The notes: a model not told the origin generated them from the sequence alone. 64,000 nt of DNA from Mytilus edulis (GCF_963676685.1 NC_092346.1:48484001-48548000); one strand, 5' to 3'; shown: positions 2,896 through 64,000, counted from the first letter of the stretch. Program-made: numbers and translations.

Positions 2896-2948
2896 TTAGT
2901 ACACTTTTTCTTTGACCGCTGGTTCGTATCCATCCTCTTCATCATATC
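2896..2948 (-). CDS. Gene A exon 20 (acidic C-terminal tail, stop)
   Basis: GYDEEDGYEPAVKEKVY*, followed 1 nt later by a GTAAGA donor. Confidence 0.82.
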
Positions 2949-5900
2949 CTAATTGTTAAAAAAAATGTCAATTATAGCAATAACTGATTACGTACAATTT
3001 TTTGTTTCTTATGTTTATGCAATATACAAATTTTGCAATGCATGCGTAAAGATTATAAGTTTTATAAAGAAGTTTCAATAAGAATTTTTCATAACTTTAC
3101 AGTGCATGCTGTTGAAATCTAGTTAGGGACAACAGCAAATGCATGTAATCAGGCTCCTTAAAAAATATAAACAGTCAATAACACAAGAAAAGCCCGTTAA
3201 ACATATTTCCATTCAAATATACATGAAACCGAGTTATATATTCCAAGAAAAACAACCTTACAGTTCACGTGGGGTGTATGTTGACCAAACCTTCTATAAA
3301 TTCTGTAAATGGTATATGTATAAACATAAAAAATATGTGTTTTACCGTCGGTATATAGATCAAACAGGCGCCTTTTCTTTAGTTTTCCAAAGCATACGCT
3401 TCTACTATGATAATGTGAATAGCAATGACTCCAATACCTCCAGAATCGTTTATCACCACATGCCAGTTGGTATGCTACAAATAAATTACATGATACATAT
3501 TGTTAACCACAACTTAATATTAACGATTTTCGCAGTAACATAATAACGCGAATATAAATTGTAGGTAATATGGTAAACATTAATCTTCCCTAATGTAACA
3601 CATCTAGAATTTTTATTTTAAAATTTTTACAATGCTTGTTGTTTAGTTTATTTTTGACAAGTGCAGCTATATCTAACCAGGTATAAAAAAAATAACCCAT
3701 GCATGCGTCTATTTTTGTAGTAAAGTATATATCTTTTCTATTTGAGATTAAGTTTATATGGATACGACTTTCATAAGTATCTTATATTCAGTGTTAATTT
3801 GAGATATTAAAAAGACTGTCAGTTCGAGGAAAACACGAGATGGGATGTATATGATTAATATATAATTTACTTTTTACAATGAAGTATTATTTTAAAACAG
3901 TTTGAAAAGGCACGTAATATAAATGATGAATTGCATATTTCGTATCTAGTAATAATTCGCCAATTTGCATATTTCGTTTCTAGTAATAATTCGCTGATTT
4001 GCATTAAAAGTTAGACAGGTTTAATATGATGAGCGACATTTATTTTCTAAATGAGAAATTATATTGGAAGTAAAGACACGACCCTGTGACGTGCAGAGAA
4101 TGTAAATACTTTTTATTTGAAATATTAACATTGTTATAGCATTTGTAGGCATGTTGAAGTAACAATTATTGTGGACGTTAATATTTTTTGGTCAATTCAA
4201 TTGTTTTGATCAGTTGTTCTTACCTTTGCCACCATATGAAAATCTGTGCTGTCTGATTTTAAATCCATGATATTTCTTGTAGTAATCTATGTAACGTACA
4301 TGCCTGTGACTGTGTCTATGACGATAAGCATAACTATGTTTCTTGAGATTATACTCGTGTTTCTTATGGAGATGTCTCACGTTCAACTCATGCTTCTTGT
4401 TTTGATACTGACGTGTATTCAAATGCCTCTTATGTTGATGTTCAACAGTTGACAAATGATGTTTTGTGTGTTTGTGGAGTCGTTTAACATGATAATCTAC
4501 GAGTTGTTTAAATCTATTTATATGACTTCTAGCCTCGTTTGCAATTCTGCTGACGTGTTTGTTAGCCTGGTGTTGAATGTGGCGAACATGTTTATTTGAT
4601 ACATGAGATATTCTCGCTACATGACTCTTGGCTACTCTATGGATTCTTCTTGTATGGTGATGAGCAATTTGTCTGTGCCGGTACAGGTGCTTTCTCAGAG
4701 CATGATGGTCTGTAAAACGATAAATAAAATATATGTACTGATAGTAATGATTATTGTGGGTAAATTTACGATATTTCAATTATGTTTTAAGATATCAGAA
4801 TTAATAGAATAACGAAAAATAATAACCCGATTAAAAATTGATTTCGTGATGAAATAATCGTCAATGTCAAATACCTTAATTGCTTGTGATGATAGTTATC
4901 AATGCATATTGATATGTAAAATGGTAGTAAAATCGTAGATTTCCGCACTCTTAAATTTATTTTAAAAAGTAAAAAAAATTTAGAAATTCAAAATATAAAA
5001 AAAGGATAAGAATCATATGTAATGTGTCTTCGATAAAGTCTTTAAGCAATGCAGAATTAAACGTATTTAGTTTCAATTTACGTTTGAACATTTATCTCCA
5101 ATGAATCTATAAAAGAGAAGATAATTTTTCATAAAATGTATATTTTGAACTGAAATTATGAATAAAAAAAGTATAAAAAATCAAACAAAAATAATAGTAT
5201 AAGCAACAAATACGAATATATCTCCTGTCATATAAAGTTTAAAGTACATACGTCTAACGTATCTATAGAAGAGATGATGTCTTCCTAGTCGTCTAAAACA
5301 GGTCCCTACACTATGATAACGATGATAACATTGTCCCCAGTGTCTATAGAATCGGCTTCTGCTACATTTCAGTTTGTATGCTGCAATTAAAAAATGTCTT
5401 TTTTTCAAAACTGTCGAATGCTTGAAATGTCCTGAAGAGGATTGTCAAATAAGACAGCTCAATGAAAAAAAGTTAAAATATATGAAAAAACTACTAAAAA
5501 GTATACTACAAACATTCATTACGAGTTGTGTAAATAAATCACAATTTAAAAAGTATCGTGTATGAAATGTAAAATATGAATTATAAGTTATTAATATTCT
5601 TATGTTTTCATACTATTTGCAAATGGCTTTGTGTTCTTTGTTTACAAATAAACATACATTCTGGACAAATTGCGGATCACTGCTATGAATATAAACGACC
5701 AAAATGGTTACTGTGTTAATATTTCCGCCATTGACGTTATCCCTTTGAAAATATTTAAGTATTTTTAAATTCGCTCACCAATTCCGTTGTATGAAAATCT
5801 ATGATGTCTTATTCTGAATCCATGATGGCTATAGTAGTAACTACGGTCATATATAGGCCCGGAACTGTAACCAATTTCGGAATAATCTTCTACATAATGA

Positions 5901-8900
5901 TAAACATAATAGTTAAACTCAATGATGGAAAGGTTTTAAAGCATGTTTTCAATGTTTCGATGTAATCATTCACAATTAAATATTTAATGTATACCAGTTT
6001 TTTCATATTAACCAGCATCCAGTTTTAATTTCACGGAGAACATTTTGAACAAAATTTATCCTCAGAATAAATGTTTCGTTACGGTTTTTTTTTTCTTGGT
6101 TCATGTCGAAAAATACAGTAAGGTTAAAAAAACGTGGACAACTAACTGTTAAATATAATAGGACCAACATTTCATCGAATTTGTAAATGAAACAAGAATA
6201 ACAAAGAAAATACATGCTTAAGGTGGAACCTAACACTACAGGCATAAAATCTGTAAAATCAGATAAACGTTTTAATTACGTTGTGTTGTAAAGGGTATAT
6301 TAAGCTTCTCAATGATCAAAATTAGGCCGTGTTCACACCAAACTCCATGTACAGTAAACTTGTTTACAATTAGTGTAATGCACTGGACATTGGTTTCACA
6401 TTAAATTTGTTCACATCTATACACCTTGTTTAATTACCTGTGCATAAGATTTGTTCACACTTGTAAACTCTATGTCATTTAAATGTTCATTACGTAGAAT
6501 CGAATGAAAAGTTTTCGAACAACTTTTCTAGCAGTAAGGGAACGACCATTTGACTCTGAATAGGGGGAATGGAAATATTCCGATCCCCAATTGGATAAAG
6601 AAAACAATTGTGGTTCTACAGATGATAAAAAATATTGTGAATCAAGAGTTTCCCCATACATGATAGAGTTAAATGTAACAGTTTGAAGAAAAAAAATTTG
6701 ATTACCAGCATCGAAAAAAAAACCCGGAATAAAACGTTTGCACGGAAATAATTCTGACTCAGATAAATAAACAAAATACCCCCCCCCCCCTCTTTTTTTT
6801 AAAGTTATGTGGTTGCTTCTTTATGAAAGCCATTTTGATGATTTGCAGTAGTTTAAAGATACTAAAGATGTCTCGATTCAACATTAGAAAACGTAGGCTG
6901 GAACAGCGTGCTTACAGACGAAGAGGGAGGATTGATATATTAGGGATCACTATATTTCTATCTTTTCTGTTTGTTCAAATGGTACTCTTCTCCAAGAAGT
7001 ATTTGGCAAAAGGGTGGGGGGTAATTTTTTTTTTAACTTTAACTAAGTGTAATTTCAAGGATCCGAGATACTACACATACAATACATTTACCTCACACTT
7101 TTTAAGTAATCCATTTATGAGTGAACCGCTGTTTGAGTAAAGACCAGTGGCAAATATTTCTGTGTAAGTCAAATTTATTCGGAAAGACCTTAATTTTCAA
7201 ATGAATTATGTGTTCGGCAATGATGCTGCTTTGAGTCTTGATAAGGGCTTTATAAAGCTACGTTAAGTTTTATTTCTAAACAAAACAATTAAATATATCA
7301 AGTTTAGACAAATATTTATGTAAGTAACTTTATAATAATTGCTATAAATATCCATTGTATTTAAAAATCGTTTCTTCTTTAAATATGCACGATGAAACTA
7401 ATGTTTTGAATGCCTATTTTTATGTACACTTAATCTACACAAGGCCTACATCGAGTATCGATTGCATGTAGACAAAACATGAATTACACTACATGTAAAC
7501 ATTGAGTTTGATCAATGGGAACTTAATTTTGTTTAGTTTACGTGTGAGTTACACTTACACAACACCGAGTTTAGGTCAATGGGAACACGGCCTTAGTGTA
7601 ATTTTTCTGATAAAATAGTAGGTTCAAATTTTATGAAATTTTTATATTTTTGTCATAGGGTGAAAGTGAATACATTGTAAAAATTTTATGAAAATTCAAC
7701 GAGCCAAATTAATCTTAGTGAAGGTGTTTGGTACCACCTTAAGGCCGTGCGCTGAAGTAAAGTCATTTTGTCTCTTGCGGAGAGTTGTCTCATTGACAAT
7801 TATACCACAGTTTTTTTATATATATATTTAAACTGTCATTTAATAGTATACCTCCGCCGTATCTATAGAATAGATGTTGTCGATGTAGCCGTCCAAAGCA
7901 GCTTCCTACACTGTGGTATCGGTGATAACATTGACCCCATAGTCTGTAAAATCGGCTTCTTCCACATTTCAGTTTATATCCTGAAGTTTTAGAGATTTTC
8001 ATTTCCAGATGTTTATACTAAAATACTACTGAATTTCTCAAACGAGTAAGTTATATGAATTAAGATGAAATATGAAGATCATTTTCAATTTTTTACTATT
8101 ATTTCTAGCATTGCATTTAAATGGAAATTGTATAGGAATGTACGATTTACCCTCTAATATACTTTACACATAAAAAAAAGAATTTCCTAATATTTTAAGA
8201 TTCGCTTACCAATTCCGCCATACGTGAATTGATTATTTCTAATGGTAAATCCATGATGGCTCTTGTAATAAGCAAAGTCATATGTAATTCCGCTGCTATA
8301 ACCAGCTCCGTACGCACTGTGAGTTACACTTGAGTAACCTGCTAATTATATAAAACCAGAAAATTCAAAATTGATATTAAAAAGAGCTGACAAAAAAAAT
8401 CACATGTTACTAATCGTTTGATAAACATATTGATTCTGAAAAGAGTGACGAAAGACACCAAAGGGACAGTTAAACTCATAAATCGAAAATAAACTGACAA
8501 CGCCATCGCTAAAAATGAAAAAGACAAATAGACAAACAATAGTACACATGACACAACATAGAACAATTTAAGAATAATCAACACGAACCCCACCAAAAAC
8601 TAGGAGTGATCTCAGGTGATCCGGAAGGGTAAGCAGATCCTGCGCCACATGTGGCACCCGTCGTGTTGCTTATGTGATAAAAAATCTGGTAAAAAGTCTA
8701 ATTCGGTAGGTCAAATTCATGAAAGGGAAGGGGATTGTAGTTACGACGTAAGGAACATATCCGATATCATTTGTGAAACGGTTATTCCATAACGGTCAAC
8801 CAACTCGTGATGAGGTCCCTAAAATTAACGATGGGACGATTTCAACTTCACCATTTGGAACTCTTGGTTTAATAGCTTTCTCTAACTTTCATATAAAATA

Positions 8901-11900
8901 ATAAAACAAAATACAAATAAATACTTTGTGCATGCATTAAATTTCTGTCTTTTTACCACTTTTAAAACAAATTATCTATTTAGCAATCACGACTAAAAAA
9001 ATATTTTTCCCTCGAATTTAAAAAAAACATCAGTACCTTTATTCTTATTTAAACAGATATCACTCAAATCACTATTTTGAAACCAATGATGTAAAAATAT
9101 TTGGCAGCAAAATGAAATTAATATACTCTAAAGAATAGCCTAATGTTCACCTAAGGGCATTTATGTTTTAAACCAAAACAAAATACTTCAGTTTTAAACT
9201 TTAATTTGTATGTGGTATACATGATATATTTAATATGATTACCATTGTAATATGAAAACAGATGTTTTCTTCTTAGGTATCCAAAACATCTACCAACACT
9301 ATGGTATCGACCATAACATCTGTTCCAATAACTGTAGAAACGTCTCTTACTGCAACTCAGTTTGTAATCTATGTGAAATAAAGACACGAAAAGTAAGAAC
9401 ATACCAATGGGCAACAAAAATTTTAAGCACAACTAATATAGAAGAAAAATCTAAATTACAATTTACAAAAACGCCGCAGGGAAATATGTTTCTATCTGCC
9501 AATCATCTAAGCCAGTTGGAATGAGAATGTTTTAAATGCCTGGCAATCGCCTGTCTTTATGATGAGTTCTAGCCATACATTATTGGAGAATGGACAAATT
9601 TTCAATCATTTTTAGAATCTTTTTAAGAGAAAATCAAGCTTTCCATGGACGAAATCACGAAGACATTGCTATCAATGGCCGTATAATTGTGACATGTACC
9701 TACTACTACATATATAGATTGAACATTTAAAAATTACTCAACTTTTCACAAACTTCTTTATTTCGGCGAAAAGTGATAGATGTATAAAAAAACTTCGAAC
9801 ACTTTTTTCTCAATCTTTTCAATAAAATAAAATACACATTTATATTCATATATAAATGAGTTATAAACTGTATATATATATATACATGTATATATTATAT
9901 CTATACTATTAAACGAGAAGACCTCATTTTGGGTGTCGCTTCTCTTCCTTCCACAATAAATCAATCATCATGCCTCTGTGTCCTATAGGTAACATGCATA
10001 GTCGCATTTGTCATCCATTCTTATGATTATTCAGATTGAGTTATTTTGGGAGAAAAACGACAAAAAAGGAGTCCGGATATGATTCCGTCATCAGACTGAC
10101 TTTTAGTCATAGATAAGACTTCCGGTTTGAAACATGCACAAACACAACCAATCGTATGATAGATAACAAAAAATCAAAAATAAATAAGCCTATCAAATCG
10201 TTCTCCATGTCATGGTGTTTAGATCGCAAGAACCACAACTATTATACCTCCTTATAAAGGACAATTATTTTTCGCGTTTATCTACATGTAAACTACGATT
10301 ATACTACTTTAATATAGAGACTCTCTGTATTCTGTCTACTGTTTTTCCTTCAATTGTTTACTATTTAAGGGGTCATACCAGTTGCATATATATTAAAATA
10401 AGTAAAACATGTGACACATTTAAAAAAAACAATCGTATGATAGATAACAAAAATGAAAAATAAATAAGCCATTCAGAGCGTTCTCCATATCATGGTGTTT
10501 AGATAGCAAAAATAACAACTATTATACCTCCTTAGAGAGGACAATTATTTTTTGCGTTTCATTTCATGGTGTAAAGATCGCAAGAACCACAACTATTATA
10601 CCTCCTTAAAGAGGACAACTATTGTTCGCGTTTATCTACATGTAAACTACGATTATACTACTTTAATATATAGAGACTCTCTGTATTCTGTCAGGGACTT
10701 TCTATGTTAGTATAGAAAGTCCCTGATTCTGTCTACTGTTTTCTTTGAAATGTTTACTATTTAAGGGGTCATACCACTTACATATATATTAAAATAAGTG
10801 AAACATGCTTAACTTCATCTTAAACTACCTCGACCAAAAACTTTAACCTGAAGCCGGACTGACGGACGACCGACCGAACGAACGCACGGATGCACAGACT
10901 AGATGGGGCATAACAATTTATTGTTGAAAGTGAAAATAGTGATTTGGCAAAAATGAAAGTAAGCCGTAGAGATTAGAGGAGGCAGGGCCTTTTTCGGGCG
11001 TCGGGATCGGGTGTTTTGAAACTCGAGATTTGGGGATTGATCCTTACGGGATCCGGGAATATATTTTTCGATTTCGGGATTTCGGAATATGAATTTCTTT
11101 AAATTCTGCATCTCGGGATTTCGGGATCAGGACCCCTCCGACCACCCCTCAAATTAGCCTTAGTCGGTCTTAGTCATTTATACAAGATTCATATCCTACC
11201 ATTGGCATGTTAGTAAGACTCAAAAGAAAAAAAGCACTGATGGATTGTCCTTGAAGCATATTTTATTAGACTTATAATGGACTATATATAAGCAATTACA
11301 TTTATTTGATGTTTGAAATATAAGCAGTTACATTTATTTGATGTTTGAAACAGTGCAAATTTTTAATTTGATTTGACTTTTACCAAAAAAAGCATTGTAG
11401 CAAAAGAGACGAATAATTGTGGTCTGAGGCCAGAAACACGAAAATAATTGAATTTAACAGAAAGGAAACAAATATCGGACTTTGGAAAAAGGGAGAGGGC
11501 TTTTGATACCTTTTATGAAATTCTTCATACATAATATCTTTTTAAAAAATAATTCTACAATAGTTCACAAGCTGTATGTGCCCGCGATTTCGCGGGTGTG
11601 TTCTAGTATTTATTTATAATGTAACATTATTATTAACTTTTTGTTTTTATTTTATTATTTTTAAGTGATGAAGCGAATGGACACAACTTATCGTCAAAAT
11701 CAGTTCCAAATATATAATTTCATACGGTTATACAGTTTATCTTGTTTGTTGCTCTGTGTGTAAGAAATAGTTAATTCTTGCTTGTTTTTCATATGTATAG
11801 ATATATAAATGACTTACATTTTCCTCCGTATCTGAATCTCCCGTGGGAAATCTTAAATCTTCGGAAACGTGTGTACCCGGCAAGGTGCATGTGACCATGA

Positions 11901-14900
11901 TATGAATGAGGTGATCCAATCAGATGTCTTTTCCTCAATACTGACACACAGGTGCTTGCATGATGGAACTTATTGTAGCAGGAAGTCATATAACGAATGA
12001 ACTTTGATCGTCGGCACCCAAATTTGTAATCTAAAAAAAAGTTTAGTTTATTCTAGAATAAGGGGATTTAATATGATTTTAAATGAGCCACCCATTCAAA
12101 CAGAGACTATAGGAATATACTGTGAATATCTATATGTTACCGTACGACCTTCTACAATTATCCAAAAACATACCGTTTGGTAATTAAAAATAGAGAAACA
12201 GCAATTCTGTGCATGCTCAAATATGTGTATCATTGAAAAGAGAACTGGTTTGAATACAAATAAGTTTTGAAGACAAATCGGCATAATTGGGATTAAATTT
12301 TGTACACAATTTGTTTATATTGACAAACAGCTGCTCTGTGGGCAATGCATTTTTATTTTAAATATTGGAACCGATTTAATGTAATATGAATGGATGCATT
12401 GTATTATTTAAAAATGAACGAATTTAGTGTTGAACTTTGGTTAACTACTAGAAATATATGTACAAGACATACAAAGAGATAAAGCATTGTCGAATTTCTT
12501 TTTCTTGTTAGCTCATTCGATTATAATTAGTCAATTTTAAACAAAAATGGCACTTACATGATCTTCCGTAAACAATGCCTCTCTTTACAAAAGTTACACC
12601 TAAGCCAAATCCATGACCATATTTATGGTAAACGTGTCGTCTACCAATCAAACCTTGTTTAATCAGACCAGGGAAACAATCGCCTATATCTCCATAATCT
12701 TCATAACAGGAATTTAGTGCACCGTACAGTTTTGTTGAACTGCAAAGACGTCCATAGTCTGACATAAAAAAAAACTTATTATTATAAATACATGCATTTA
12801 CACATTCAATGCAGCTCAGATCTAAAAAGAAAATGATAAAGAAAAAAACCGATTCAACCTGGAAAATATACAATCATTATAACCATTACTTTTAGAAAGT
12901 TGTCTTTCTTGTTCATAATTATTACTTTTCATTCAGTATTTGACACTGAAACATATTAGTTCTACAGTAATTTTGGGAACATTTTGAATAAAAATATGTT
13001 ACTTGCACCTGAAATGAACAGGTTTTTTTTACTGCCTGTGGATTTTGTAAGATTTAACTAGAAATGTAAATACGAAATTGCCTCATTAGATTTCTAAGTA
13101 ATATAATCCCGAAAAAAAAATAGTTCTGCAACAAAAGTCTAGTGCAGTGTATAGTTGACTTACAGAATCCATTATATCTGATTCCACGGCCGATAAGTTC
13201 AACGCCAAGTCTGTGGAAACGATTGAATATGCGTCCTACATGAAATCTGTAGGCATGTCCTGAAAGTCAAAGACAATAGCGAAATATTATAAGATCTACC
13301 TTAACTGTAGGAAATTGTGACATCAAAATATAGTGTGACCTTTGATATTATGATTTGGTAATGAAAAGAGACACGAAGCAAACTTAAATGTGAAAGACAC
13401 AAGTCGACAGAAATAAGCATAATATATTTGCAGATTCTATTAAATTTTATATATGTATTATTTGTTTTATCTTCAGTATTGCCAAATAAATTTGAGTTTG
13501 CCTTTCATAAATATCTGATTTAAATGGAGTTATGTGCTTTGTTTGCTGAATTAATATCAATTTAACACAGCAAAAGTCAAAAGTTACAAATTACTGATTC
13601 AATTGAGTCAAAAAATGACTGATAAAAACATATTTGGTACATTTGATCTTACCTTTGCCACCATGTGAAAATCTGTGATGAATGAGGCTGTGACCATGAC
13701 CATAACGATAACCATGTTTCTTAAGATAATATTCGTGTTTCTTATGGAGATGTCTCACGTTTAATTCATGCTTGTTGTTCTGATACTGGCGTTCATTCAA
13801 ATGCTTCTTATGTTGATGTTCAACAGATGACAAATGATATTTTGTGTGTTTGTGGAGTCGTCTAAGATGGTAATCTACGAGTTGTTTAAATCTATTCATA
13901 TGACTTCTAGCCACGCTTGCAATTCTGCTTACGTGTTTGTTTGCCTGGTGTTGAATGTTGTGAATATGTTTGTTTGATACATGAGATATTCTCGCGACAT
14001 GACTCTTAGCTACATTATGGATTCTTCTTGCATGGTTGTTAGCAATTCTTCTGTGATGGTACAAGTGTTTGTTCAGAATAGCATGAGTGGCTGTAAAATG
14101 ATAGAAGCATATATTGTACTATTGCTATATATGTCATATCGAGCTCGTTTTATGTAGTATGCAATATAAAAATGTTCAAGATTTTTTTTTTTTATGCAAA
14201 GCATTCAATTGAGAAAATAAAAATAAAAACAACCATGTTAACAGCAATTTATAGTATTCAATACAAATTGATAGAACCATTAAATTTCTATAATAATCGA
14301 TAGCATCAATGATATGGCTGTAATTTTATTTGTTGCGAAGTACATTGTGAAATGGAACAAATGAATAAAAAAAAGGTGAAGAATAAATTAAAAAAATAAA
14401 ATAGTATTTTATAAACTTTTCTCGTTAACACCATCAACAGTTCCTTTCTCAATTTCATTTTGTAAGGAAGTGAAATAGATACACTGTCATATAAATTTAG
14501 AAAAATGTACCTCCAACGTATCTGTAGAAGAGATGAAGACTTCTTAGTCGATCAAAACAGATCCCCACACTATGATAACGATGATAACATTGACCCCAAT
14601 GTCTATAGAATCGGCTTCTGCTACATTTCAGTCTGTATGCTGTAATTAAAATCTATCTTGTTTCTAGGGTGTTGAATTATAAAAAAGCAAGATTGAGTCT
14701 TAATTAACTAAAAGAACTGCATACGATGAATCCTCGGTTATTAATCATGATAGAAATATTGGATATAAAAATATTCATAAATGGGAGCAATTAAAAAAAA
14801 AGCAATGGCAAGTATTATGATAAAAATTAATATATGAAATGTTAGCAACTTCTATTATGATGTTATCCATATTCATATTTTAGCCACTGTCTTTATTATC

Positions 14901-49129: not shown

Positions 49130-49482
49130 TTGTATGCTAACTTAAAATAGTCTGTTATTTGTGTCGATTGGTTACTGTTTCACTTACGTATACTCCAAAT
49201 ATCCTTTAATTTATTTATATATCAACAATACAATATGAGATACCAGTCTTATGATTTACATGTCTAAACATTAAATGGAGGTGATATCTTTTGGTTTTCT
49301 TCTGTTGTAATGTTGCGGTGTTATTGTCGTGAACCCCATACATCCTTTATTTACAAAGCACGAAAATGTCGGCGTTCACCTCAAAAGCTATCCAAACCTT
49401 TGAACAGACTTACAAGAAGGGATAAAGATACGTTTCTGTTGTGAGGTCATTAAAGATGACATATTTTTGCTGGTATATTGAT

Positions 49483-50110
49483 TTACTTATAGGGTCTTTG
49501 CATCGGAAAAAACCACACTTATTCTTAAATAAATTGTTGGCATGACACGGGATATGTTCTTCTCATATATTGTATGATGGTATGATACTAAACCCCTAAC
49601 AGGAGGGATTGTGCTTGGTATGCATATGCTGGAGACATAATCTTTAAATCAGTTCAATTGAGGTCTAGATCTGGCATGTCATTAACTGCTAGTAATCCTT
49701 TGTAATTAATGCAGCATTGTTATTTTCCTCTTTTGTTTTGTATTATGTCATTGGAATCAGGCTTCTTTTAAACTGTGTTTTACTGTGCGTGTTGCTGTAT
49801 GTTACTTTTTTCTGCATTGGCTAGAGGTTTATGTATACGGGAGGGTTGAAATCTCATAAAAAAAAGTTTAACCCCGCCGCATTTTTGTGTCTATTCCAAA
49901 TCAGGAGCCTCTGTCCTTTGTTAGACATGTATGGTTTTAGTTCACTTTTATATTTTGGAATTAAGTATGCCGTTCATTATCACTGAACTAGTACGTTTTT
50001 TTGTTAAAAGGCCGGCTGAACCATGCCTTCGGGTGTGGGAGTTGACGACCCATTGGTGGCCTTCGTCTGGTTTTGCACTTTGGTCGGGTTGTTGTCTATT
50101 TTCAATTTTA
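49483..50110 (+). mobile_element. Family P1 fragment, opposite orientation, degraded
   Basis: Reverse complement of ~62756-63420 (GGGTCTTTGCATCGGAA...GGTCGGGTTGTTGTC). Confidence 0.7.
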
Positions 50111-51012: not shown

Positions 51013-51058
51013 ATGACTCGAGGAGTGTTCACTTTTTTACTGGTTGTCTGTGTGACAG
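51013..51058 (+). CDS. Gene C exon 1 (signal peptide)
   Basis: MTRGVFTFLLVVCVT, G|GTAAGT; 46 nt like A/B exon 1. Confidence 0.82.
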
Positions 51059-54000: not shown

Positions 54001-57000
54001 AAGCATTTGTGTGCAAAAACTACAAAAGCAAGGTTTGATCGGAGCACCCCATCCTTTAACAGGTTATGTAGGACGCAATACTGGTTATCATGGCTTTAAA
54101 ATAGTACATGGTCGTTTCAGCTACCATGGACATGGTAATATTATAGATAACATATTTGATAGAAAAATCGTTCTACAATTTAACATTTGCAATTTGGGAA
54201 ATAATTATTTCTCATTTGTCGCCATGTTAGAGGTATTCATGATTAAATTCGGTTACCAATCAACCAAACCCTTATTAAGTTGACCTAATTTTAATTTCAT
54301 TAAGCCTTGATAAGTTCGTTTCTACAGCTTCGTTAGGATCTCTGAATTATTTTGACTTTCTGTACCACAAGTCTCACTTTTGTTATTCAAATGATATAGC
54401 AAAACATTTTCCCCGCCTAAATGACGACAAAGGGAAATAACTCAAACTGAAATAACGTCAACTAACAAACTTTATATATAGTGATACATTTTATACTCAA
54501 ACAGGGAAATGCGCTGTATTCAGATCAATCTTTCTATTAATATCGTATTACTGTGTTGATCTTTATGAAATTTTCTGTGTGGAAAATTAAAAAAAAAGGA
54601 ACAGAAAATATTAGACCTGTGTTCACTATCCATTAGAAATAGATATTCAAAGAGGCAAACAATGCTCTAAATATCTTCTGTAAAATTTGTTTCTCATTGA
54701 TTTGATAATTATTAATAATAAAGCTATAATTATAAAAATATGGAGAAGTGATTGCCTATGAGAAAACTATCCACGAACGATCAATGCAGGCGAAAAAAGA
54801 GGTCTTCAAACACGAGACCTATCTGCGTTGCATTAAAGTAATGGTCCGATACTACCAAATTTAAAACGAGAAACCAACGGCCTTTTTTGTGTTTAAAACA
54901 ATAAACGATAACAAATTTAGACAAAAATAGACAACGAGCAACTGTCTTGAGACATGCAAATAAAATATGTAGTGGGGTGAAAAATATTTTTTAAATGATA
55001 ATTTCTCTCCAACCCTTGAACAGTTGTATAACAGCACTACATAAGAAAAAAACCTAGTGTATTTACTTATGTTTTAGCGTACAAGTTGAGCTGCAGTACA
55101 ACTCGTTTTTACAGTGTGTGGAATAAATGTTACAACCACTATCACAGTGTGGGTCGGTGCTTCGGATATCTACAACAAAAACATCTGTTTGTCTCATATT
55201 CTTCCACCTCAATAGGTAATTATTTCTAGTATCATTATTTTGTTCATAAAGTTCTTTTCAAAATATGAAACTATTATTTTATTCAAATGATCACATATCA
55301 AAAATTATTGGTGTGAAGTAGAGTTGTGCTTTTTAAAACAAAAACTTGAATATGATATCGTACGACAAAATTATTTTGCTCATTAACCGCCTGAATAAAC
55401 TAAATATTGTGAACATTCATAACAAAAAGCTATTTATGAATGACTGGTGTAGGTGTTTAATGCCAATTTCAGTAAAAGGGACTTTTAAAAAGGCGACAAA
55501 AGTTTATTGGTTCAAAAAGCATATATATTTTTTTTAATTGATATGTTTTTTTTTTTTTATGAAATACTTATATTTTATTTGTTTTGGTTTCAAAGTAGGC
55601 TACCATGGATATGATCAACTTGGATTCAAAATAGTTCATGGAGGATTCTCATATCATGGAAAAGGTAAAATAGTAAAATAGTTATCAACAAAAGCTCTGC
55701 TGAAAAGTGTATCAAGTTGAAAAACATGGAACACAAAACCTCGACACTAAAACTTTTAAATCGCTACTCTATTGGCTTCGAAAATAAAGACTAAGATGGG
55801 GGATACTTTGAAGCTTTCAATAATTCATCACATGGAAAAGTTTGTTTGAATATGGTTTACGATTTGACTGAAATATTAAAAGCTTGTTTCTATGTGTATT
55901 TCATTTCTAACATTCGTCTCTTCCAAAATCTTAAACAAATTAAGGATGGCAAAAAATATTTCAATAGTTCATTATCCATGTGAAGTTTGGGTCTGTGTGA
56001 TAACTATTATGATTAAGGAATTTTTTTTTACATAGAATTAACTATGTTTTGTAATTTCAGCTTACACACTGAAATGTAGTGAGAGCAGATTTTATAAAGT
56101 ATGGGATGATTGTTATGGACATTACCACAAAGGCAGTTTGTGCTTTGACAGACTATTTAAACAGGGTCTTTTTGGTAAATATATTTATTACTTCTTTAAT
56201 TATGCACTTACAAATAACATTAATCAGTGAAGTTCTTCCAATGCAACAATTGTGGTTTTAGTTTTTGCCAAAAGCATGTCAATAACAAAATCATATCAAT
56301 AAATGAAGATAGTATAGGGGTTATTCTTAAATGAACAGCAACCCAACGATACAAAAATGTAAAAAGACACCAAGAAGTAAGCGTATCGTCTTCAATAATA
56401 GACAGACTTATTTACAAAAAAATACACGAATGTAAGTATCCAACCATTAAAACTACTTTCGATCAAATTTTTCCTGAAATATATATAGATGAATAATATA
56501 ACCAAAAACTATTCGATGAAGACAACCACAACTAATACATGGACATGTAGATCTGTCCTGGTCAATTTCAGCTGTGTTTTTATAGATATATAAAAAGTCT
56601 TAAGAAAAAGGAACAACACTAGCTATTAGATTTTTAACTACGAATCAACTAATTAAAATATATGTATATCACAAATTGTTAAATATGTGGTGACGATTTT
56701 TATTTGATAGTATATACTTTACACTAATTTACCTATTATAGGTTACAATGTAGACAGTGACTATGCCCATGGTGACATCGATTACCTTGGCTATTACAAC
56801 AGTCATCACGGATTTCACTTAGTCGATGGAGGATTCACTTACAAGGATGTTGGTAATAACAATGCTACTACAAAACAAAATGATTTACTGTCCTGACCGT
56901 GTAAATATAACTTTAAGAATGAGATGCTCTTTTTTTATTTCATAGAGTCCCAAAAGGGGGAATTGTTAGCACATTTTTTAGTGTGAAATGGACCTTCAGC

Positions 57001-60000
57001 CAACCCTTTTGCACCATAATAAAATTTCAAAAAGTATCATTTTTGTTTAAAATATACGCCCCGTATGAGTTGAAAAGACAAAAGTTACTATAAATTGGTT
57101 AAAATTGAAAATTATGTAAAATCTTTTGCGAAAAAGAAAAATTTCAACATTTAGTGCAATTTAAGTGTATCAACTTTATTTTGTGCGACGCTTGTGGTCT
57201 CTGTTTATTCAACCAATAAATGCATACACATACCCAATGTTGACACAAAAGCTGACATTTACCACTGTGGCAATATTAATTCACATACTAGGCAAGTTAT
57301 GTTCATGCAAGGCTGAGCTTTTGACAGTTTCAATGACTAATAAGTTATATGTTTTTCTTACAGCTTACAAATTGAGCTGCAAAACAGACCGTTTCTACAG
57401 ATCATGGCACGATTGCTACGACTCATACCACAGTGTAGATGTATGTTTTGGACGATTGTACAAAAGCCATCTGTTTGTGTCATTAGGTAATTTGATTTGA
57501 TATCTGAAATTTCTCTTCAGTTAATTAGTTTAAAACGAGCATTCATGTATGCAATATACAATGATTACTTCTATATTTGGAAGTTTAAGTGATTTTAAAA
57601 ATTGAAGACTTGAACGGCAATTAACACAAACATGTAAGACTAAGAAGCATATTTCTGTATTTCACTTTGTATTTTTAAATCTAAATTGGTTTTTAGATTT
57701 ATGTTAAATGATTGTTAAACATTAGGTCTTTAATTCGTATTTGTCATGTTTGTATATTTCGTAATCAAGTTTCAAATAAACTTATTATATTTTTTATTTT
57801 TTATATAAATTTTATTGGTGCAAAAAGCATATATATTTTGTTAATTGATATGTTTTTTTTTATGAAATACTTCTATTTTATTTGTTTTGGTTTCAAAGTA
57901 GGCTACCATGGATATGATCAACTTGGATTCAAAATAGTTCATGGAGGATTCTCATATCACGGCAAAGGTAAAATAGTGAAATAGTTATAAACAAAACTCT
58001 GCTGAAAAGCTTATCAAGCTGAAAATATGGAACACAAACCTCGACACAAATATTTTAAAATCGCTACTCTATTGGCTTCGAAAATAAAGACTAAGTTGAG
58101 AGATACTTTGAGGCTTTCAATAATTCATCACATGGAAAATTGTTTGCATATGGTTTACGATTTGACTGAAATATTGAAAGCTTGTTTCGATGTGTATTCC
58201 TTTTCTAACATTTGTCTCTTCTAAAATCTTATAGTTCATTATCCATGTGAAGTTTGGGTCTGTGTGATAACTATTATGATTAAGGAATTTGTTTTTTTTT
58301 TACATAGAAATAACTATGTTTTTTAATTTCAGCTTACACACTGAAATGTAGTGAGAGCAGATTTTATAAAGTATGGGATGATTGTTATGGACATTACCAC
58401 AAAGGCAGTGTGTGCTTTGACAGACTATTTAAACAGGGTCTTTTTGGTAAACATATTTATTACTTCTTTAATTAAGCACTTAAAAATAAAATTGATCAGT
58501 GAAGTTATTCCAATGCAACAATTGTGGTTTTAGTTTTTGCCAAAAGCATGTCAATAACAAAATCATATCAATAAATGGAGATAGTATGGGGGTTATACTT
58601 AAATGAACAGCAACCCAACGATACAAAAATGTAAAAAGACACCAAGAAGTAAGCGTATCGTCTTCAATAATAGACAGACTTATTTACAAAAAAATACACG
58701 AATGTAATTATCCCACCATTAAAACTACTTTCGAATATATTTTTCTTGAAATATATATAGATGAATAATATAACCAAAAACCTATCCGAAGAAGACAACC
58801 GCAACTAATACATGGACATGTAGATCTGTCCTGGTCAATTTCAGCTGTGTTTTTATAGATATATAAAAAGTCTTAAGAAACAGGAACAACACTAGATATT
58901 AGACGTTTAACTACGAATCAACTAATTAAAATATATGTATATCACAAATTGTTAAATATGTGGTGATGATTTTTATTTGATAGTATGCACGTTATACTAA
59001 TTTACCTATTATAGGTTATAATGTAGACAGTGACTATGCCCATGGCGACATCGATTACCTTGGCTATTACAACAGTCATCACGGATTTCACTTAGTCGAT
59101 GGAGGATTCACTTACAAGGATGTTGGTAATGCCTGATTTATTTTGTATTAATAACAATGCTACTACAAAACAAAATGATTTACTGTCCTGACCGTGTAAA
59201 TATAATTTTAAGAATGAGATGCTCTTTTTTTTTATTTCATAGAGTCCCAAAAGGGGGAATTGTTAGCACATTTTTTAGTGTGAAATGGACCTCCAGCCAA
59301 CCCATTTGCACCATAATAAAATTTCAAAAAGTATCATTTTTGTTTAAAATATACGCCTTGTATGAGTTGAAAAGACAAAAGTTACTATAAATTGGTTAAA
59401 ATTGAAAATTATGTAAAATCTTTTGCGAAAAAGAAAAATTTCAACATTTAGTGCCATTTAAGTGTATCAACTTTATTTTGTGCGACGCTTGTGGTCTCTG
59501 TTTATTCAATCAATAAATGCATACACATACCCAATGTTGACACAAAAGCTGACATTTACCACTGTGACAATATTAATTCACATACTAGGCAAGTTATGTT
59601 CATACAAGGCTGAGCTTTTGACAGTTTCAATGACTAATAAGTTGTATGTTTTTCTTACAGCTTACAAATTGAGCTGCAAAACAGATCGTTTCTACAGATC
59701 ATGGCACGATTGCTACGACTCATACCACAGTGTAGATGTATGTTTTGGACGATTGTACAAAAGCCATCTGTTTGTGTCATTAGGTAATTTGGTTTGATAT
59801 CTGAAATTTCTCTTCAGTTAATTATTTTAAAACGAGCATTCATATATGCAATATACAATGATTACTTCTATATTTGGAAGTTTAAGTGATTTTAAAAATT
59901 GAAGACTTGAACGGCAATTAACACAAACATGTAAGACTAAGAAGCATATTTCGGTATTTCACTTTGTATTTTTAAATCTAAATTGGTTTTTAGATTTATG

Positions 60001-63000
60001 TTAAATGATTGTTGAAAATTAGGTCTTTAATTCGTATTTGTCATGTTTGTATATTTCGTAATCAAGTTTCAAATAAACTTATTATATTTTTAAGATCATG
60101 GAGATGTGCATACTGTACACACCAATTACCATGGATACAAATATCTTGGATTTAGGGTAAATCATAGAAGATTTACATATCACGGAAAAGGTAAAAATGA
60201 CATGACTTTTTCCCAACATTTATAATATTTTGATAATGTGTAATGATTGAAAATTGAAAAGAAAATGATTCATATCGGAAAGTTGCCCTTTCGAATGGAA
60301 AAATCAAAAGCTCAATCACATCAAACAAATAAAAAATTCCTGTCATATTCCTGACTTGGTACAGTACATTGTTGCAGTTATTATGCAGCACGAATTAATA
60401 GTTAGTACCATACGCTCTAAATATAAGCATATCCTTTTTCGCATACGATTCACGTCGTTCGAGTTAGTGGTTAAATCAAATAAAGTGATTAAATACTGTA
60501 AGATTGAACTATTATATAAACGTATTTGACAAATAATGTCTGAAGCAAGGGGTAGTTCTATAATTTTTTGTGTGTCAAATTTAAACTGATTGTGTGTTAC
60601 AATTGTTTCTTGTGCTTTTTACCTGTATAATTTAAACAATATGTTTATTATCACTTTTGAAACGGCTGTATTAATTTAGAAACAAGAGCTTATTTTAAGA
60701 TTTATGTTAAAGATCTTCGAAAATATAGGTTGTCTTGTGGTTTTAACTAACTGGCCTTTCAATCTACAGCAGAAAAGTTGCATATTTTATTATTGCAACG
60801 AATATATAAAGTTGCATCTCTTTTCAGCATACAGACTGAAATGTAGTACAAGACGTTTTTATGGTTTGTGGGACGACTGCTATAACCATTACCACAGTAG
60901 AAGTCTGTGCTTTAACAAAATCTATAAACAACACTTCTTTGGTAAATACATATCTGTGCAATAAAATTTTATTTTATTGAAATATCTAAAAAGAAAAGTA
61001 CACTTATTCAATGGTTAAACAATAATTGCATTATAATTCCTGTGAGTCGTTTTATTTTGAACTATTATTTCAGCCAAATTGTTTATATAATACGAATGTA
61101 ACAAATGCATATTGTGAGACCATTGTTGTATATTATCTTTACTTAATCCTTGAAATTTAGTCACTAATATAGTACAAAGCTTCACATGCTTTCCTTTTGA
61201 AATATGTTTTCTTTTAAAATCTTTACAGGTTACTACCATGGGGCATCTTCCATTGTGAACGGTGGTAATTACGTTGACGACTTTGGATACTATAAGGCTC
61301 ATCACGGATTTAGTATTGTGAACGGAGGATTTTCATACAACGGTGCCGGTAAGTTTTGTTGTTTTTTCAGATTATAATACATTGTCAAATCACCAAACAA
61401 ATCATATTTAATTGAAAAATAAGGCATAACATTTGAATATAAGTGATATATTAGTTTCCAGTATTAAAGCTATGCAAGAAGGACCAAATAAACTTTTGAG
61501 AAATCAATATTTTTCATATACCAATTCGTATTAGTATTAATCTTTTATTAGTTTGTAATTTTCTTATACTTGAATTTTTAGTACCTTGCTTGATATATAC
61601 ATACATTAACCATATGTACTGATACCTATCACATTTCACCATATGCTTTTTCACGATTTTTCAGCTTACAAGCTCAGTTGTAGCAGAACACGTTTTTACA
61701 AAGCTTGGAGATCTTGTTATGGCACTTATCATAGTGTAGATGTATGTTACGGACGATTGTTGAACGATCATCTCTTTGTTGCCCTAGGTAATTTAGGATG
61801 TTTTTTTTGTAACTGTAAATAATCTAATTTAGCAAGTGGTATTTCGTCGAGGCTAATATTGCAATAATTTGAATTTCAACATTTTTTAAATCAGTTTTAA
61901 ATTAAATGCCATGGATATCATAATAATTTTCATAAATGCAAACATATTGCTATTTTTCGAATGTAAATTTCGTAATTAAAATTTACTTTAGATAAATAAA
62001 ACAACGATTTTTTACAATTTGGTTAAAAGGAAAATTCGTTTTTGTATGAAACATAAACAAGATTTGCAAATATATTTTATTATCTTTTTAAGACCATGGA
62101 GATAATTACTCTGTACACACCAATTACCATGGGTACAAATATCTTGGATTTAAGTTACATCATAGAAGATTTAGCTATCATGGAAAAGGCAAGTAAAATA
62201 GAACAACATTTCGCGCTAGATATTTGCATATTTACTTTAATTGTGTGTAATAATAGGAATGCATGGCTTGCTCCCCTGCAACTGAAAGAAACACAAGGGA
62301 TTAACAAATTAACGACACATGATGCCTAGTAACCTGTCAAAAGTAAGATGTACCTCTAACATTTTTCTCGTCAACTTTACACTACTGCAATTTTACCTTG
62401 TAATGTGTTACAATTGTTTCATTTGCTTAGTATTATTTCAATTATTTATGCAATGTTTCTGGTCATTTGGCAGCATCAATTTAAAAAGAACAGTTTAATT
62501 TACGGTCAATGTTACATTTGTACAAAGCTATATGTTTTCATATCGAATTAGGAAACTGAACCTTTCATCAACAAAAGTGTATATGAAATTTGTGAACGGA
62601 ATATTCAAAATGATCATCTTTTTTTCAGCATACAGACTGAAATGTAGTACAAGACGTTTTTATGGTTTGTGGGACGACTGCTATAACCATTACCACAGTA
62701 GGAGTCTGTGCTTCAACAAAATCTATAAACAACACTTCTTTGGTAAATACATAGTAAAATTGAGAAAGGAAATGGTGAATATGTCAAAGCGACAACCACC
62801 CGACCATAGAGCAAACAACAGCCGAAGGCAACCAATGGGTCTTCAATGTAGCGAGAATTCCCGCACCCGTAGGTGTCCTTCAGCTGGCCCCTAAAATATG
62901 CATAATAGTACAGTGATAATGGACGTCATACTAAACTCCGAATTATACACAAGAAACTAAAATTTAAAATCATACAAGACTAACAAAGGCCAGAGGCTCC

Positions 63001-64000
63001 TGACTTGGGACAGGCGCAAAATTGCGGCGGGGTTAAACATGTTTATGAGATCTCAACCCTCCCCCTATACCTCTAGCCAATGTAGAAAAGTAAAACAATA
63101 ACAATACGCACATTAAAATTCAGTTCAAGAGAAGTCCGAGTCTGATGTCAAAAGATGTAACAAAAGAAAATAAATAAAATGACAATAATACATAAATAAC
63201 AACAGACTACTAGCAGTTAACTGACATGCCAGCTCCAGACCTCAATTAAACTGATTGAAAGATTATGTCTTCATCATATGAATATCAGGTACAATCCCTC
63301 CCGTTAGGGGTTTAGTATCATACTATCATAAAATATATGAGAAGAACATAACCCGTGTCATGCCAACAACTGTTTTTTTAGAAATAAATGTGTTTAGTTC
63401 CGATGCAAAGACCCTATCAGTGAATCAATGTTAAAGCCAAAATATGCAATCTTTAATGACCTGACAACAGTATCGTAACTATATCCCCTTTTAATAAGTC
63501 TATTTAAAGGTTTTGTTAGTTTCTGAGGAGAATACTGACATTTTTGTGCTTTATAAAGAATATTTCCATAAAATTTTGGATGTGAAATACCTGAACGTAT
63601 AAGATGTCTGCATGTTGAGTTATATTTACGAATTATTTCCTTATACCGGTGATAAAATTTAGTAAATGTTTTGACCATAGTGCATTTTTTATTTTTTTTT
63701 ATTAAAAACTTTAAAAAAAAATATACACTTATTCAATGGTTAAACCATATATCACCGCATTATTATTGCAAGCCGTTAAATTCGAATTATTGTACAACCA
63801 CAATGATCATTCTACACTGATCTATGAACGAAGATTTTACGAGCATGGCTTTTGTTAACATCAACTTAAATAAGTCCTTTTAATTAATTTCAAGAATGTA
63901 AAACTATGTATTCTTTCATTTTAGTTTTTTTTTTTCATTCAAAATACTTTATAGGCTACTACCATGGTTCATCTTCCATTGTTCATGGTGGTGATTACAT
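51013..64000 (+). CDS. Gene C: divergent paralog of the same foot-protein family with many Cys/His and Gly/Tyr/His modules; 3' end outside the window
   Basis: Exons 51013-51058, 52059-52202, 52816-52911, 53438-53638, 53928-54134, 55078-55215, 55599-55664, 56061-56174, 56742-56852, 57364-57486, 57902-57967, 58333-58446, 59015-59125, 59661-59783, 60095-60190, 60828-60941, 61229-61348, 61665-61787, 62093-62188, 62629-62742, 63955-(64000). All phase 1; exons 1, 3 and 4 have the same lengths (46, 96, 201 nt) as in A/B; signal peptide MTRGVFTFLLVVCVTATITEG. Confidence 0.8.
52059..52202 (+). CDS. Gene C exon 2
   Basis: ATITEGYGSYRHGGIVGHTGLYKNHLTSYKDLLTGYGNDHAAGHIYHS; donor GTACAC is weak, so the 3' boundary is less certain. 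Confidence 0.75.
52816..52911 (+). CDS. Gene C exon 3
   Basis: GHFHKIVVGRLYRRFHQFGIDLIGNGLRYKNY; 96 nt. Confidence 0.85.
53438..53638 (+). CDS. Gene C exon 4
   Basis: YFARKCEPLKLYNAFSSCFNEYGRIEDCFPGLIKDGLIG...GIIYHKT; 201 nt. Confidence 0.87.
53928..54134 (+). CDS. Gene C exon 5
   Basis: VYHYHVRSLEFIWTMTSCYNSFHHASICVQKLQKQGLIG...HGRFSYHGH. Confidence 0.85.
55078..55215 (+). CDS. Gene C exon 6 (Cys/His module)
   Basis: AYKLSCSTTRFYSVWNKCYNHYHSVGRCFGYLQQKHLFVSYSSTSI. Confidence 0.87.
55599..55664 (+). CDS. Gene C exon 7 (short Gly/His module)
   Basis: GYHGYDQLGFKIVHGGFSYHGK; AAGTAG tandem acceptor. Confidence 0.82.
56061..56174 (+). CDS. Gene C exon 8 (Cys module)
   Basis: AYTLKCSESRFYKVWDDCYGHYHKGSLCFDRLFKQGLF. 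Confidence 0.87.
56742..56852 (+). CDS. Gene C exon 9 (Gly/Tyr/His module)
   Basis: GYNVDSDYAHGDIDYLGYYNSHHGFHLVDGGFTYKDV. Confidence 0.85.
57364..57486 (+). CDS. Gene C exon 10 (Cys/His module)
   Basis: AYKLSCKTDRFYRSWHDCYDSYHSVDVCFGRLYKSHLFVSL. Confidence 0.87.
57902..57967 (+). CDS. Gene C exon 11 (copy of exon 7)
   Basis: GYHGYDQLGFKIVHGGFSYHGK. Confidence 0.82.
58333..58446 (+). CDS. Gene C exon 12 (copy of exon 8)
   Basis: AYTLKCSESRFYKVWDDCYGHYHKGSVCFDRLFKQGLF. Confidence 0.87.
59015..59125 (+). CDS. Gene C exon 13 (copy of exon 9)
   Basis: GYNVDSDYAHGDIDYLGYYNSHHGFHLVDGGFTYKDV. Confidence 0.85.
59661..59783 (+). CDS. Gene C exon 14 (copy of exon 10)
   Basis: AYKLSCKTDRFYRSWHDCYDSYHSVDVCFGRLYKSHLFVSL. 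Confidence 0.87.
60095..60190 (+). CDS. Gene C exon 15
   Basis: DHGDVHTVHTNYHGYKYLGFRVNHRRFTYHGK. Confidence 0.83.
60828..60941 (+). CDS. Gene C exon 16 (Cys/His module)
   Basis: AYRLKCSTRRFYGLWDDCYNHYHSRSLCFNKIYKQHFF. Confidence 0.87.
61229..61348 (+). CDS. Gene C exon 17
   Basis: GYYHGASSIVNGGNYVDDFGYYKAHHGFSIVNGGFSYNGA. Confidence 0.85.
61665..61787 (+). CDS. Gene C exon 18 (Cys/His module)
   Basis: AYKLSCSRTRFYKAWRSCYGTYHSVDVCYGRLLNDHLFVAL. Confidence 0.87.
62093..62188 (+). CDS. Gene C exon 19 (GC donor)
   Basis: DHGDNYSVHTNYHGYKYLGFKLHHRRFSYHGK then G|GCAAGT; paralog of exon 15. Confidence 0.8.
62629..62742 (+). CDS. Gene C exon 20 (copy of exon 16)
   Basis: AYRLKCSTRRFYGLWDDCYNHYHSRSLCFNKIYKQHFF. 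Confidence 0.87.
62756..63675 (-). mobile_element. 5'-truncated Penelope-like retroelement (family P1): RT C-terminus plus 3' UTR
   Basis: Track ORF 63394..63678 (KTFTKFYHRY...GISHPKFYGNILYK) resembles a PLE RT C-terminus; CATAGT direct repeat at both ends; same 3' end recurs in the window. Confidence 0.72.
63955..64000 (+). CDS. Gene C exon 21 (partial, cut by window end)
   Basis: GYYHGSSSIVHGGDY..., paralog of exon 17. Confidence 0.8.

Follow-up and report, generated by a model that had tools for sequence, protein, structure and literature searches.

What proteins are made by a locus whose coding sequence is divided into small exons of strikingly uniform construction, and what does this construction allow? 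We considered this question for a stretch of 64,000 nt in the DNA of the blue mussel, Mytilus edulis (C3:48,484,001-48,548,000; hereafter the window, numbered from its first letter), which is AT-rich (about 31% G+C) and has no runs of N. On six-frame inspection, the window proves to contain many short open stretches in which His, Tyr, Cys, and Gly abound; those of the minus strand lie at 3.2-43.6 kb, and those of the plus strand between 51 kb and the window end. We consider it very likely that three genes lie here in tandem, all paralogs within the mfp-12/YGH-rich family, which is specific to Mytilus and comprises secreted, basic proteins of the byssal plaque rich in His, Tyr, Gly, and Arg. 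These are gene A on the minus strand (21460-2896), gene B on the minus strand (43562-31622), and gene C on the plus strand (from 51013 past the window end). A first-pass annotation of the same DNA, made from the sequence alone, had proposed byssal or plaque-type proteins; this observation is real and correctly interpreted, and is largely already known, as the gene models of A and B are in RefSeq as “uncharacterized protein,” the family already bears names (mfp-12, mfp-10, YGH-rich proteins), and a characterization of its lead member appeared in 2026.

The three genes follow common rules. A scan for short ATG exons encoding a hydrophobic peptide and followed by GT retrieves exactly three convincing signal exons, all of 46 nt, and the hydrophobic 15-mer at the N-terminus of A, B, and C is a putative secretion signal, as in mefp-12. 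In total we obtain 55 exons, namely 20 in A, 14 coding exons in B, and 21 exons of C lying in the window. Exon ends were set at the phase-1 AG and GT nearest to the limits of homology (three acceptors were set by matching proteins), and the exon peptides were compared singly with database proteins, which also served to check each join. Phase 1 is common to all 52 introns in the window (including 19 in A and 13 in B), the lengths of all 52 internal exons are multiples of three (range 69-486 nt), and the splice sites are GT..AG in 51 introns and GC..AG in one (donor GCAAGT after position 62188, gene C). The first-pass annotation had described three genes, each opening with a 46-nt signal exon, and about 55 exons joined only by phase-1 introns, with every internal exon a multiple of three, and this description holds in all its parts.

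Comparison of the window's own modules with the window by TBLASTN yields six recurring exon types: N1, the N-terminal Tyr/Ser/Gly exon; Lk, a linker of 32 codons; D and T, two divergent Cys modules; C, the standard Cys module, with Ct as its C-terminal variant; G, the Gly/Tyr/His module; and H, the long His-rich exon. Along the genes, Cys/His modules and Gly/Tyr/His modules alternate, as had been noticed at first pass, and the earlier account of the differences between paralogs (two His helices in A, one in B, none in the window for C, which was credited with at least 10 Cys modules) likewise agrees with our exon table, where ten Cys modules of C are counted in the window. Since each exon carries one module and each intron follows the first codon base, cassettes can be duplicated, lost, or skipped without a frameshift; the sole exception to the rule of one module per exon is a fused CG exon of B. 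Phase-1 introns, symmetric exons, and one module per exon are also the marks of class 1-1 module genes under the exon-shuffling rule of Patthy (PMC3632108, PMC6335736), from which this locus differs in that the modules were duplicated within one young, genus-restricted family, not shuffled between families.

Among the three genes, B is the best candidate for mefp-12 on the evidence of its sequence. The mefp-12 protein of M. edulis was identified by tandem mass spectrometry (MS/MS) in plaque vesicles, with the in situ hybridization signal seen in the plaque gland only (Rivard et al., Nat Commun 2026, PMC13022425). According to the same study, it contains 9.1 mol% His, a helix predicted to span 129 residues, about 18% of them His, and six globular Cys/His domains likened to zinc fingers, the sixth being found in M. 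edulis and M. galloprovincialis only. The product of gene B, XP_071159498.1, also contains 9.1 mol% His. Its His-helix exon (33171..33650, minus, 480 nt) is modeled by AlphaFold2 as one uninterrupted helix over residues 2-130, with the predicted local distance difference test score (pLDDT) mostly above 90, and His occupies 23 of the first 129 residues encoded by this exon (17.8%). In both gene B and mefp-12 (GenBank PV698367) the single 129-residue helix is flanked on both sides by Cys/His domains. Finally, the 69-residue CG module encoded by the fused Cys+Gly exon of B (36205..36411, minus, 207 nt) is an extra, “sixth” domain, which the proteins of M. edulis and M. galloprovincialis have and the M. 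trossulus ortholog lacks, and thus the extra domain limited to the former two species is common to the gene B product and mefp-12. It is the His content, the helix length, the His fraction of the helix, and the species pattern of the extra domain that lead us to take gene B as mefp-12. Genes A and C have all module types in common with mefp-12 and differ from it in the two helices and doubled body of A and in the 16 Cys modules of C.

Gene B (31622..43562, minus) has 14 coding exons and 745 codons, with one His-helix exon. Exons 1-7 occupy 43562-43517, 42790-42617, 40384-40289, 39239-39039, 38385-38173, 37522-37397, and 36867-36745, and exons 8-14 occupy 36411-36205, 35862-35734, 34714-34583, 34154-34026, 33650-33171, 32686-32558, and 31672-31622. 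All 13 introns are GT..AG and in phase 1, and the exon peptides, abutting with one split-codon residue at each join, are 100% identical to XP_071159498.1 (745 aa). The 15-residue peptide of the signal exon (43517..43562, minus, 46 nt) is identical to that of A, and about 250 bp around this exon align with the corresponding region of A at 85% identity. A search with the B His exon for short named relatives retrieved one unnamed fragment of 155 aa only.

The wider family was delimited with a Cys-module profile built from an alignment of 23 modules. Among 1.84 billion representative proteins, the profile has 32 matches, every named one from Mytilus, and a full-length search started from one of these matches added YGH-rich protein-1 of M. 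coruscus. No module was found in unrelated protein families by the profile search, so that true shuffling is not observed, and the mfp-12/YGH-rich family thus appears restricted to Mytilus. The first-pass annotation had suggested comparing the spliced exons with Mytilus proteins: the named matches are all from Mytilus, with A and B 100% identical to M. edulis RefSeq proteins, and the byssal assignment is borne out via orthology with mefp-12 and YGH-rich protein-1 and via the module shared with Foot protein 10. The latter, mfp-10 of M. californianus (AST36128.1), contains this Cys module three times (E 3.7e-45). It has 319 aa, 2.2% His, and no helix, in contrast to A, B, and C with their 745 to about 1370 aa, 9-11.5% His, and helices, and hence mfp-10 is a different subfamily. 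A His-poor, mfp-10-like protein of M. edulis, XP_071159487.1, has the accession directly before those of the gene A products; judging by this numbering, its gene probably adjoins the window.

Gene C (51013..64000, plus) is by its sequence an ortholog of M. coruscus YGH-rich protein-1: exons 1-18 fall in order on residues 1-565 of that protein with 74-97% identity per exon and a single-residue gap per join. The 5' two thirds of the gene lie in the window as 21 exons, and the gene runs on to about 72,970 in window numbering. Exons 1-7 are found at 51013-51058, 52059-52202, 52816-52911, 53438-53638, 53928-54134, 55078-55215, and 55596-55664; exons 8-14 at 56061-56174, 56742-56852, 57364-57486, 57899-57967, 58333-58446, 59015-59125, and 59661-59783; and exons 15-21 at 60095-60190, 60828-60941, 61229-61348, 61665-61787, 62093-62188, 62629-62742, and 63955-(64074). 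The peptide of the signal exon (51013..51058, plus, 46 nt) is identical at 15 out of 15 positions to that of relative P0007 and at 12 out of 14 to that of YGH-rich protein-1, and the G exon before the sole GC-AG intron (62093..62188, plus, donor GCAAGT) encodes a peptide identical at 31 out of 31 positions to relative P0004. Past the window, in about 9 kb of downstream DNA (L001), the gene extends over another six C modules, with another five G exons in between, and ends with a His-helix exon of its own (L001:8504-8893), a short tail, and a stop, so that the full gene has 16 Cys modules and an estimated length of about 1370 codons. YGH-rich protein-1 (ALA16016.1, A0A0K2D7W0) and gene C both have the terminal His helix and lack the C-terminal Cys module. 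The former has 873 aa and seven motif-matching modules, and gene C differs from it in extra tandem cassettes. More generally, the orthologs of C have 872-1092 aa, 7 to 10 motif matches, and 9.5-10.5% His. In Mytilisepta virgata, transcripts of YGH-rich proteins rank with the most highly expressed of the foot, and the authors liken these proteins to the M. coruscus YGH-rich proteins (PMC5549309).

Gene A is a previously undescribed paralog with two helices. It (2896..21460, minus) has 20 exons and 1112 codons, and its modules are arranged as SP-N1-Lk-D-T-C-G-C-H, then Lk-D-T-C-G-C-G-C-H-Ct-tail, where SP is the signal exon. Exons 1-7 lie at 21460-21415, 20390-20238, 18829-18734, 18088-17888, 17247-17035, 16618-16493, and 15828-15697; exons 8-14 at 14639-14511, 14090-13653, 13259-13164, 12758-12558, 12030-11818, 9368-9243, and 8341-8210; and exons 15-20 at 7980-7852, 5889-5779, 5380-5252, 4709-4224, 3474-3346, and 2948-2896. 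All 19 introns are GT..AG and in phase 1, and the exon peptides, with one split-codon residue between neighbors, are 100% identical to XP_071159489.1 (M. edulis RefSeq, 1111 aa; His content of the gene A product 11.5%). The signal exon (21415..21460, minus, 46 nt: ATG, 15 hydrophobic codons plus one nucleotide, then GT) encodes residues 1-15 of this protein, and the last exon (2896..2948, minus), with the TAA stop at 2898-2896, encodes an acidic tail that forms its last 16 residues. The body of the gene is an old doubling of an internal block, which runs from Lk to H. Exons of the two blocks are 84-91% identical in DNA (86% for the two His-helix exons, at 13653..14090, minus, 438 nt, and 4224..4709, minus, 486 nt) and the introns are no longer alignable.

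Evidence from RNA bears on a part of gene A, positions 12480-18400, on which contigs from runs X1, X2, X4, and X12 (four studies) were placed. In 14 sequencing runs, about a fifth of the sampled words of this region are present, approximately what exons alone would give. The contigs give no strand, ends, or levels, and the tissues of the runs are coded. They cover the predicted exons, leave the introns uncovered, and support seven junctions of gene A at the predicted boundaries with CT..AC ends, equivalent to GT..AG on the minus strand, in three to four studies; the joints listed are 17888/17247, 17035/16618, 15697/14639, 14511/14090, 13653/13259, and 13164/12758. Spliced reads missing from the predicted junctions had been named at first pass as an outcome that would speak against these gene models, and the seven junctions show the opposite. 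Both ends of the first His-helix exon, which carries the 11-residue His stripe considered below, are seen as RNA joints, as are both ends of the 96-nt linker exon joining the two halves of A (13164..13259, minus; in X2, X4, and X12), whose paralogs are the linkers 18829-18734 in A and 40384-40289 in B. Since these joints link the first His-helix exon via the 96-nt linker to the second D module, gene A is a single transcript with two helices; its division into two genes was rejected, as no signal exon lies between the halves and contigs join 13653-13259 and 13164-12758. An eighth joint, running backward from 17247 to 12558, was considered as back-splicing, which we rejected; we read it as the junction between D and T in the second half of the gene, placed on the first copy, which is nearly identical. 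In the same region, the RNA contigs reach great depth in all four runs over two intronic segments of A, 15054-15647 and 16044-16637, where rearranged joints and loose ends are numerous and the depth ratios are unlike those of exons; these segments look like transcripts of a dispersed repeat and not like a piece of gene A.

Turning to the evolution of the cassettes, we see repeated changes of the module number. The window contains two young tandem cassette duplications, both in frame. In B (35735..36830, minus), a unit of about 549 bp is repeated with 92% identity (self-BLASTN, 35735-36290 vs 36284-36830); this duplication set a C module directly before the 3' part of a G module, which explains the fused exon 36411-36205 and thus the origin of the “sixth domain.” In C (55499..60091, plus), a 2.3-kb G-C-G-C cassette with its introns is repeated with 93.7% identity (self-BLASTN, 55499-57794 vs 57807-60091), frames and splice sites being intact in both copies. 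The module number differs both between species and between paralogs. Valency set by exon copy number, as the first-pass annotation had it, is supported by the 7, 12, and 16 Cys modules of the paralogs, the orthologs of C of varying length, and the two young duplications. The window is also only a part of the array: of 319 candidates genome-wide, 150 were scored, and these give a minimum of 131 exons that match the Cys-module profile. They form about a dozen arrays, on either strand, and lie nearly all at C3:48.28-49.04 Mb (about 0.77 Mb), with a small group at C2:11.20-11.31 Mb.

The first-pass annotation had further suggested that valency might be set by splicing, and here the evidence is divided. 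In the RefSeq isoforms of B that have 676 and 675 aa, the missing 69 residues are precisely those encoded by the fused exon. For the M. californianus ortholog of C there are isoforms without blocks of 151 and 66 residues, the blocks falling at several positions, and a 13-module M. edulis paralog has forms missing 82 residues. Models that drop whole cassettes thus exist, and at the same time they may be mapping artefacts in near-identical repeats. We put at somewhat below even the chance that the module number is fixed by the genome only, the skipping isoforms being artefacts of short-read alignment among near-identical exons. Indeed, the skipped blocks lie within arrays whose copies are 92-94% identical, the 69-aa gap of B can be placed ambiguously at residues 303-371 or 327-395, the M. 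californianus isoforms show four different deletions, all of 151 aa, and among the joints listed for 12480-18400 the RNA contigs show only constitutive junctions of gene A. On the other hand, the deleted blocks are always whole exons or whole C+G cassettes (69, 66, 82, 86, or 151 aa), and the RNA contigs carry eight further joints beyond those listed. Symmetric phase-1 exons are also the class most often skipped in animals, which we counted against purely genomic control. Two kinds of variants are distinct from cassette skipping. The G exons have tandem TAGCAG acceptors, and these account for the isoforms of A and of B that differ by one residue; for example, the G exon at 15697..15828 (minus) starts at 15828 or 15825, and RefSeq isoforms of A use either, with the RNA contigs using 15828. 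The RefSeq forms of A with 931-933 aa were considered as skipping products and rejected: they lack the first 179 residues together with the signal peptide and were taken as alternative-start models.

The Cys modules are conserved in a way that low-complexity sequence would not be. In the 23 aligned modules of about 42 residues, the invariant positions are Y1, F10, C17, Y18, H22, and C27, with C5, L31, and L36 close to invariance, which yields the pattern C-x11-C-x4-H-x4-C, that is, a set of four potential ligands, CCHC, at fixed spacing. The ratios of nonsynonymous to synonymous substitutions (dN/dS) between paralogous Cys exons are far below 1 (0.013/0.351 for D, 0.019/0.257 for T, and 0/0.26 for C), and exons of the paralogs are 85-93% identical, with introns unalignable beyond the exons and tens of flanking bases. 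Low dN/dS and alignability limited to exons point to selected, folded domains rather than drifting low-complexity sequence. In the AlphaFold2 model of a C+G unit, pLDDT is 84-91 over the Cys part, which forms two helices (residues 7-21 and 24-33), and the G part forms a beta hairpin. A Foldseek comparison of this model with PDB yields nothing at E <=0.001, which is weak evidence for a model of 68 residues, and the best match among 48,161 PDB chains by VIA-align has Z of 3.1 and is to unrelated proteins. Pfam assigns no family to nine exon translations, the one match, of the His exon to Apolipoprotein, being far below the threshold. As no credible fold relative is found, “zinc-finger-like” here refers to the ligand pattern.

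What the module cysteines do is a separate question. We favor zinc binding by the Cys modules over thiol or disulfide chemistry, as C5, C17, H22, and C27, invariant or nearly so, form the CCHC set, and as it has been reported that the predicted conformation is zinc-finger-like, that Cys and His are conserved in it, and that the zinc content of the plaque is high (PMC13022425). It is less likely, yet deserves attention, that the three cysteines of a module are free thiols or disulfides and not zinc ligands, serving redox buffering as in mfp-6, cysteinyl cross-links with 3,4-dihydroxyphenylalanine (DOPA), or intermodule disulfides, with His-metal chemistry confined to the helix and the G modules. 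This would fit the odd number of Cys per module, the secretion of the proteins, the lack of a structural match to solved zinc fingers, the presence of the module in the His-poor Foot protein 10 (2.2% His), and the known role of Cys-rich mfp-6 as a plaque reductant (PMC13022425). Of the possible roles of the whole locus, the production of some other secreted structural material, such as shell matrix, periostracum, or mucus, is very improbable: the RefSeq label “uncharacterized protein” on all products would allow it, but MS/MS places mefp-12 in plaque vesicles and in situ hybridization shows it in the plaque gland only (PMC13022425), the foot of Mytilisepta virgata has YGH-rich proteins among its top transcripts (PMC5549309), and the Cys module is common to Foot protein 10.

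The His helix has its own periodicity. In four helix exons (three in the window and one in L001), 52 columns are invariant, and His recurs at every 11th residue through about 11 consecutive repeats. Fourier peaks of the H exons are at 11/2, 11/3, 11/4, and 11/5 (5.5, 3.67, and 2.75 being among these harmonics), and the power at 3.5 and 7.0, expected for heptads, is no better than in shuffles. The 11-residue period with no signal at 3.5 or 7 argues for a hendecad-based helix, not a canonical heptad coiled coil. The same period is known for amphipathic 11-mer helices of the apolipoprotein A1/A4/E type, and the His exon has a match to PF01442 with E 0.006 and 16.7 bits, far below the cut-off of 90 (PF01442 is also the precomputed domain of XP_071159489.1). 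However, the conserved stripe of the H exons is histidine and that of the apolipoprotein-type helices is the lipid-binding face, so the likeness is in period only. For the two helices of A, complex prediction gives a score of 0.38, compared with 0.00 for the best control, at least 86% contact agreement between runs, and partner pLDDT of at least 73. The mark used in this test is reached by 51 out of 78 solved complexes and 2 out of 108 mismatched pairs; at scores <=0.60 there are 5 out of 78 solved complexes and all four passing mismatches, and such passes are more often wrong than right unless the pairing is likely beforehand, so that the score lends weak support to pairing of the helices.

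Several points weigh against our interpretation or limit its parts. The identification of B with mefp-12 stands on three quantitative matches and one species pattern. The mefp-12 study counts six Cys/His domains, and gene B has seven by profile (D, T, C, CG, C, C, Ct), six without the divergent D, and five by strict motif. The RNA contigs show only spliced RNA, gland specificity coming from the published data on mefp-12, and the cassette-skipping isoforms are RefSeq models only. The C+G model resembles no solved zinc finger or other fold, and zinc binding by the Cys module is accordingly putative. At the same time, the published description of the helix as a coiled coil with His in the core may itself need refinement in view of the hendecad period.

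Several further features of the window can be mentioned. The last coding exon of B (31622..31672, minus, 51 nt) ends with the first base of the stop codon: XP_071159498.1 ends at the last full codon of 31672-31622, after which the genome reads T followed by GTAAGA, and hence the stop codon of B is split by a further phase-1 intron, the exon beyond which was not located. At the homologous place gene A has an in-exon TAA. Intron 2 of B contains, at 41157-42403, a 355-bp tandem repeat in 3.5 copies with 99% identity and an open reading frame of 80 aa on the plus strand in each copy. Four matches to Hammerhead_1 (RF00163) fall in this repeat on the minus strand, at 41191-41234, 41546-41589, 41901-41944, and 42256-42299, with 33 bits each (E 5e-06), below the gathering score of 34, and by these features the repeat looks retrozyme-like; at the gathering score, Rfam has no matches within the window. 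Inverted repeats, each about 780 bp long, form two pairs situated between the genes and within them (1577-2352 vs 25100-25877, 86% identity; 49347-50096 vs 62791-63560, 77%) and are probably copies of transposable elements.

Taking the above into account, we can outline how these proteins may work. Each would be a string of small folded Cys/His modules alternating with Gly/Tyr/His hairpin modules, with one or two long single helices added; the mature proteins have predicted isoelectric points of 9.9-10.3 and 16-19% Lys+Arg. They would be stored as acidic fluid condensates in vesicles of the plaque gland, as has been demonstrated by others for mefp-12, which they also found in microplaques, and upon the rise of pH to that of seawater, deprotonated histidines would bind zinc, the helices would associate, and the condensate would set into a porous plaque scaffold, again as described for mefp-12. 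Consistently, a 30-residue peptide of the mefp-12 helix undergoes phase separation dependent on zinc and pH and sets into a porous solid, and the plaque has a high content of zinc (PMC13022425). Unequal crossing-over has repeatedly altered the module number, as in the doubling of A and the 549-bp and 2.3-kb duplications of B and C, respectively. We infer that A and C act in the same material as mefp-12, that the module number sets the count of metal or cross-link sites per chain, and that the gene A product could bridge two helix bundles.

The mefp-12 protein has been put forward as a His/zinc scaffold protein, challenging the DOPA-centered view of mussel adhesion (PMC13022425), in a paper that makes no mention of exons, paralogs, or isoforms. 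In the literature searched, we found no description of the organization in exon cassettes, of how the sixth domain arose, of the paralog with two helices, of the cluster size, or of the 11-residue period. Nothing is overturned by our analysis: the architecture that textbooks give for animal extracellular proteins is that of symmetric phase-1 module exons, and these additions to the knowledge of mfp-12 are useful, not surprising. The genomic context adds a large tandem family, a neighbor with two helices, the 549-bp origin of the sixth domain, and module changes safe for the reading frame, which could guide the choice of biomimetic glue constructs and the interpretation of plaque proteomics, in which peptides are shared among the paralogs. 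More tentatively, and with doubts that outweigh our expectation, the mfp-12 family may be a genomically tunable set of cross-linkers, in which crossing-over and, perhaps, regulated skipping set the number of metal or thiol sites, and gene A provides a bivalent node linking zinc-stabilized helix bundles. If so, the two-helix product of A would turn star-shaped oligomers into the open-cell network of the plaque.

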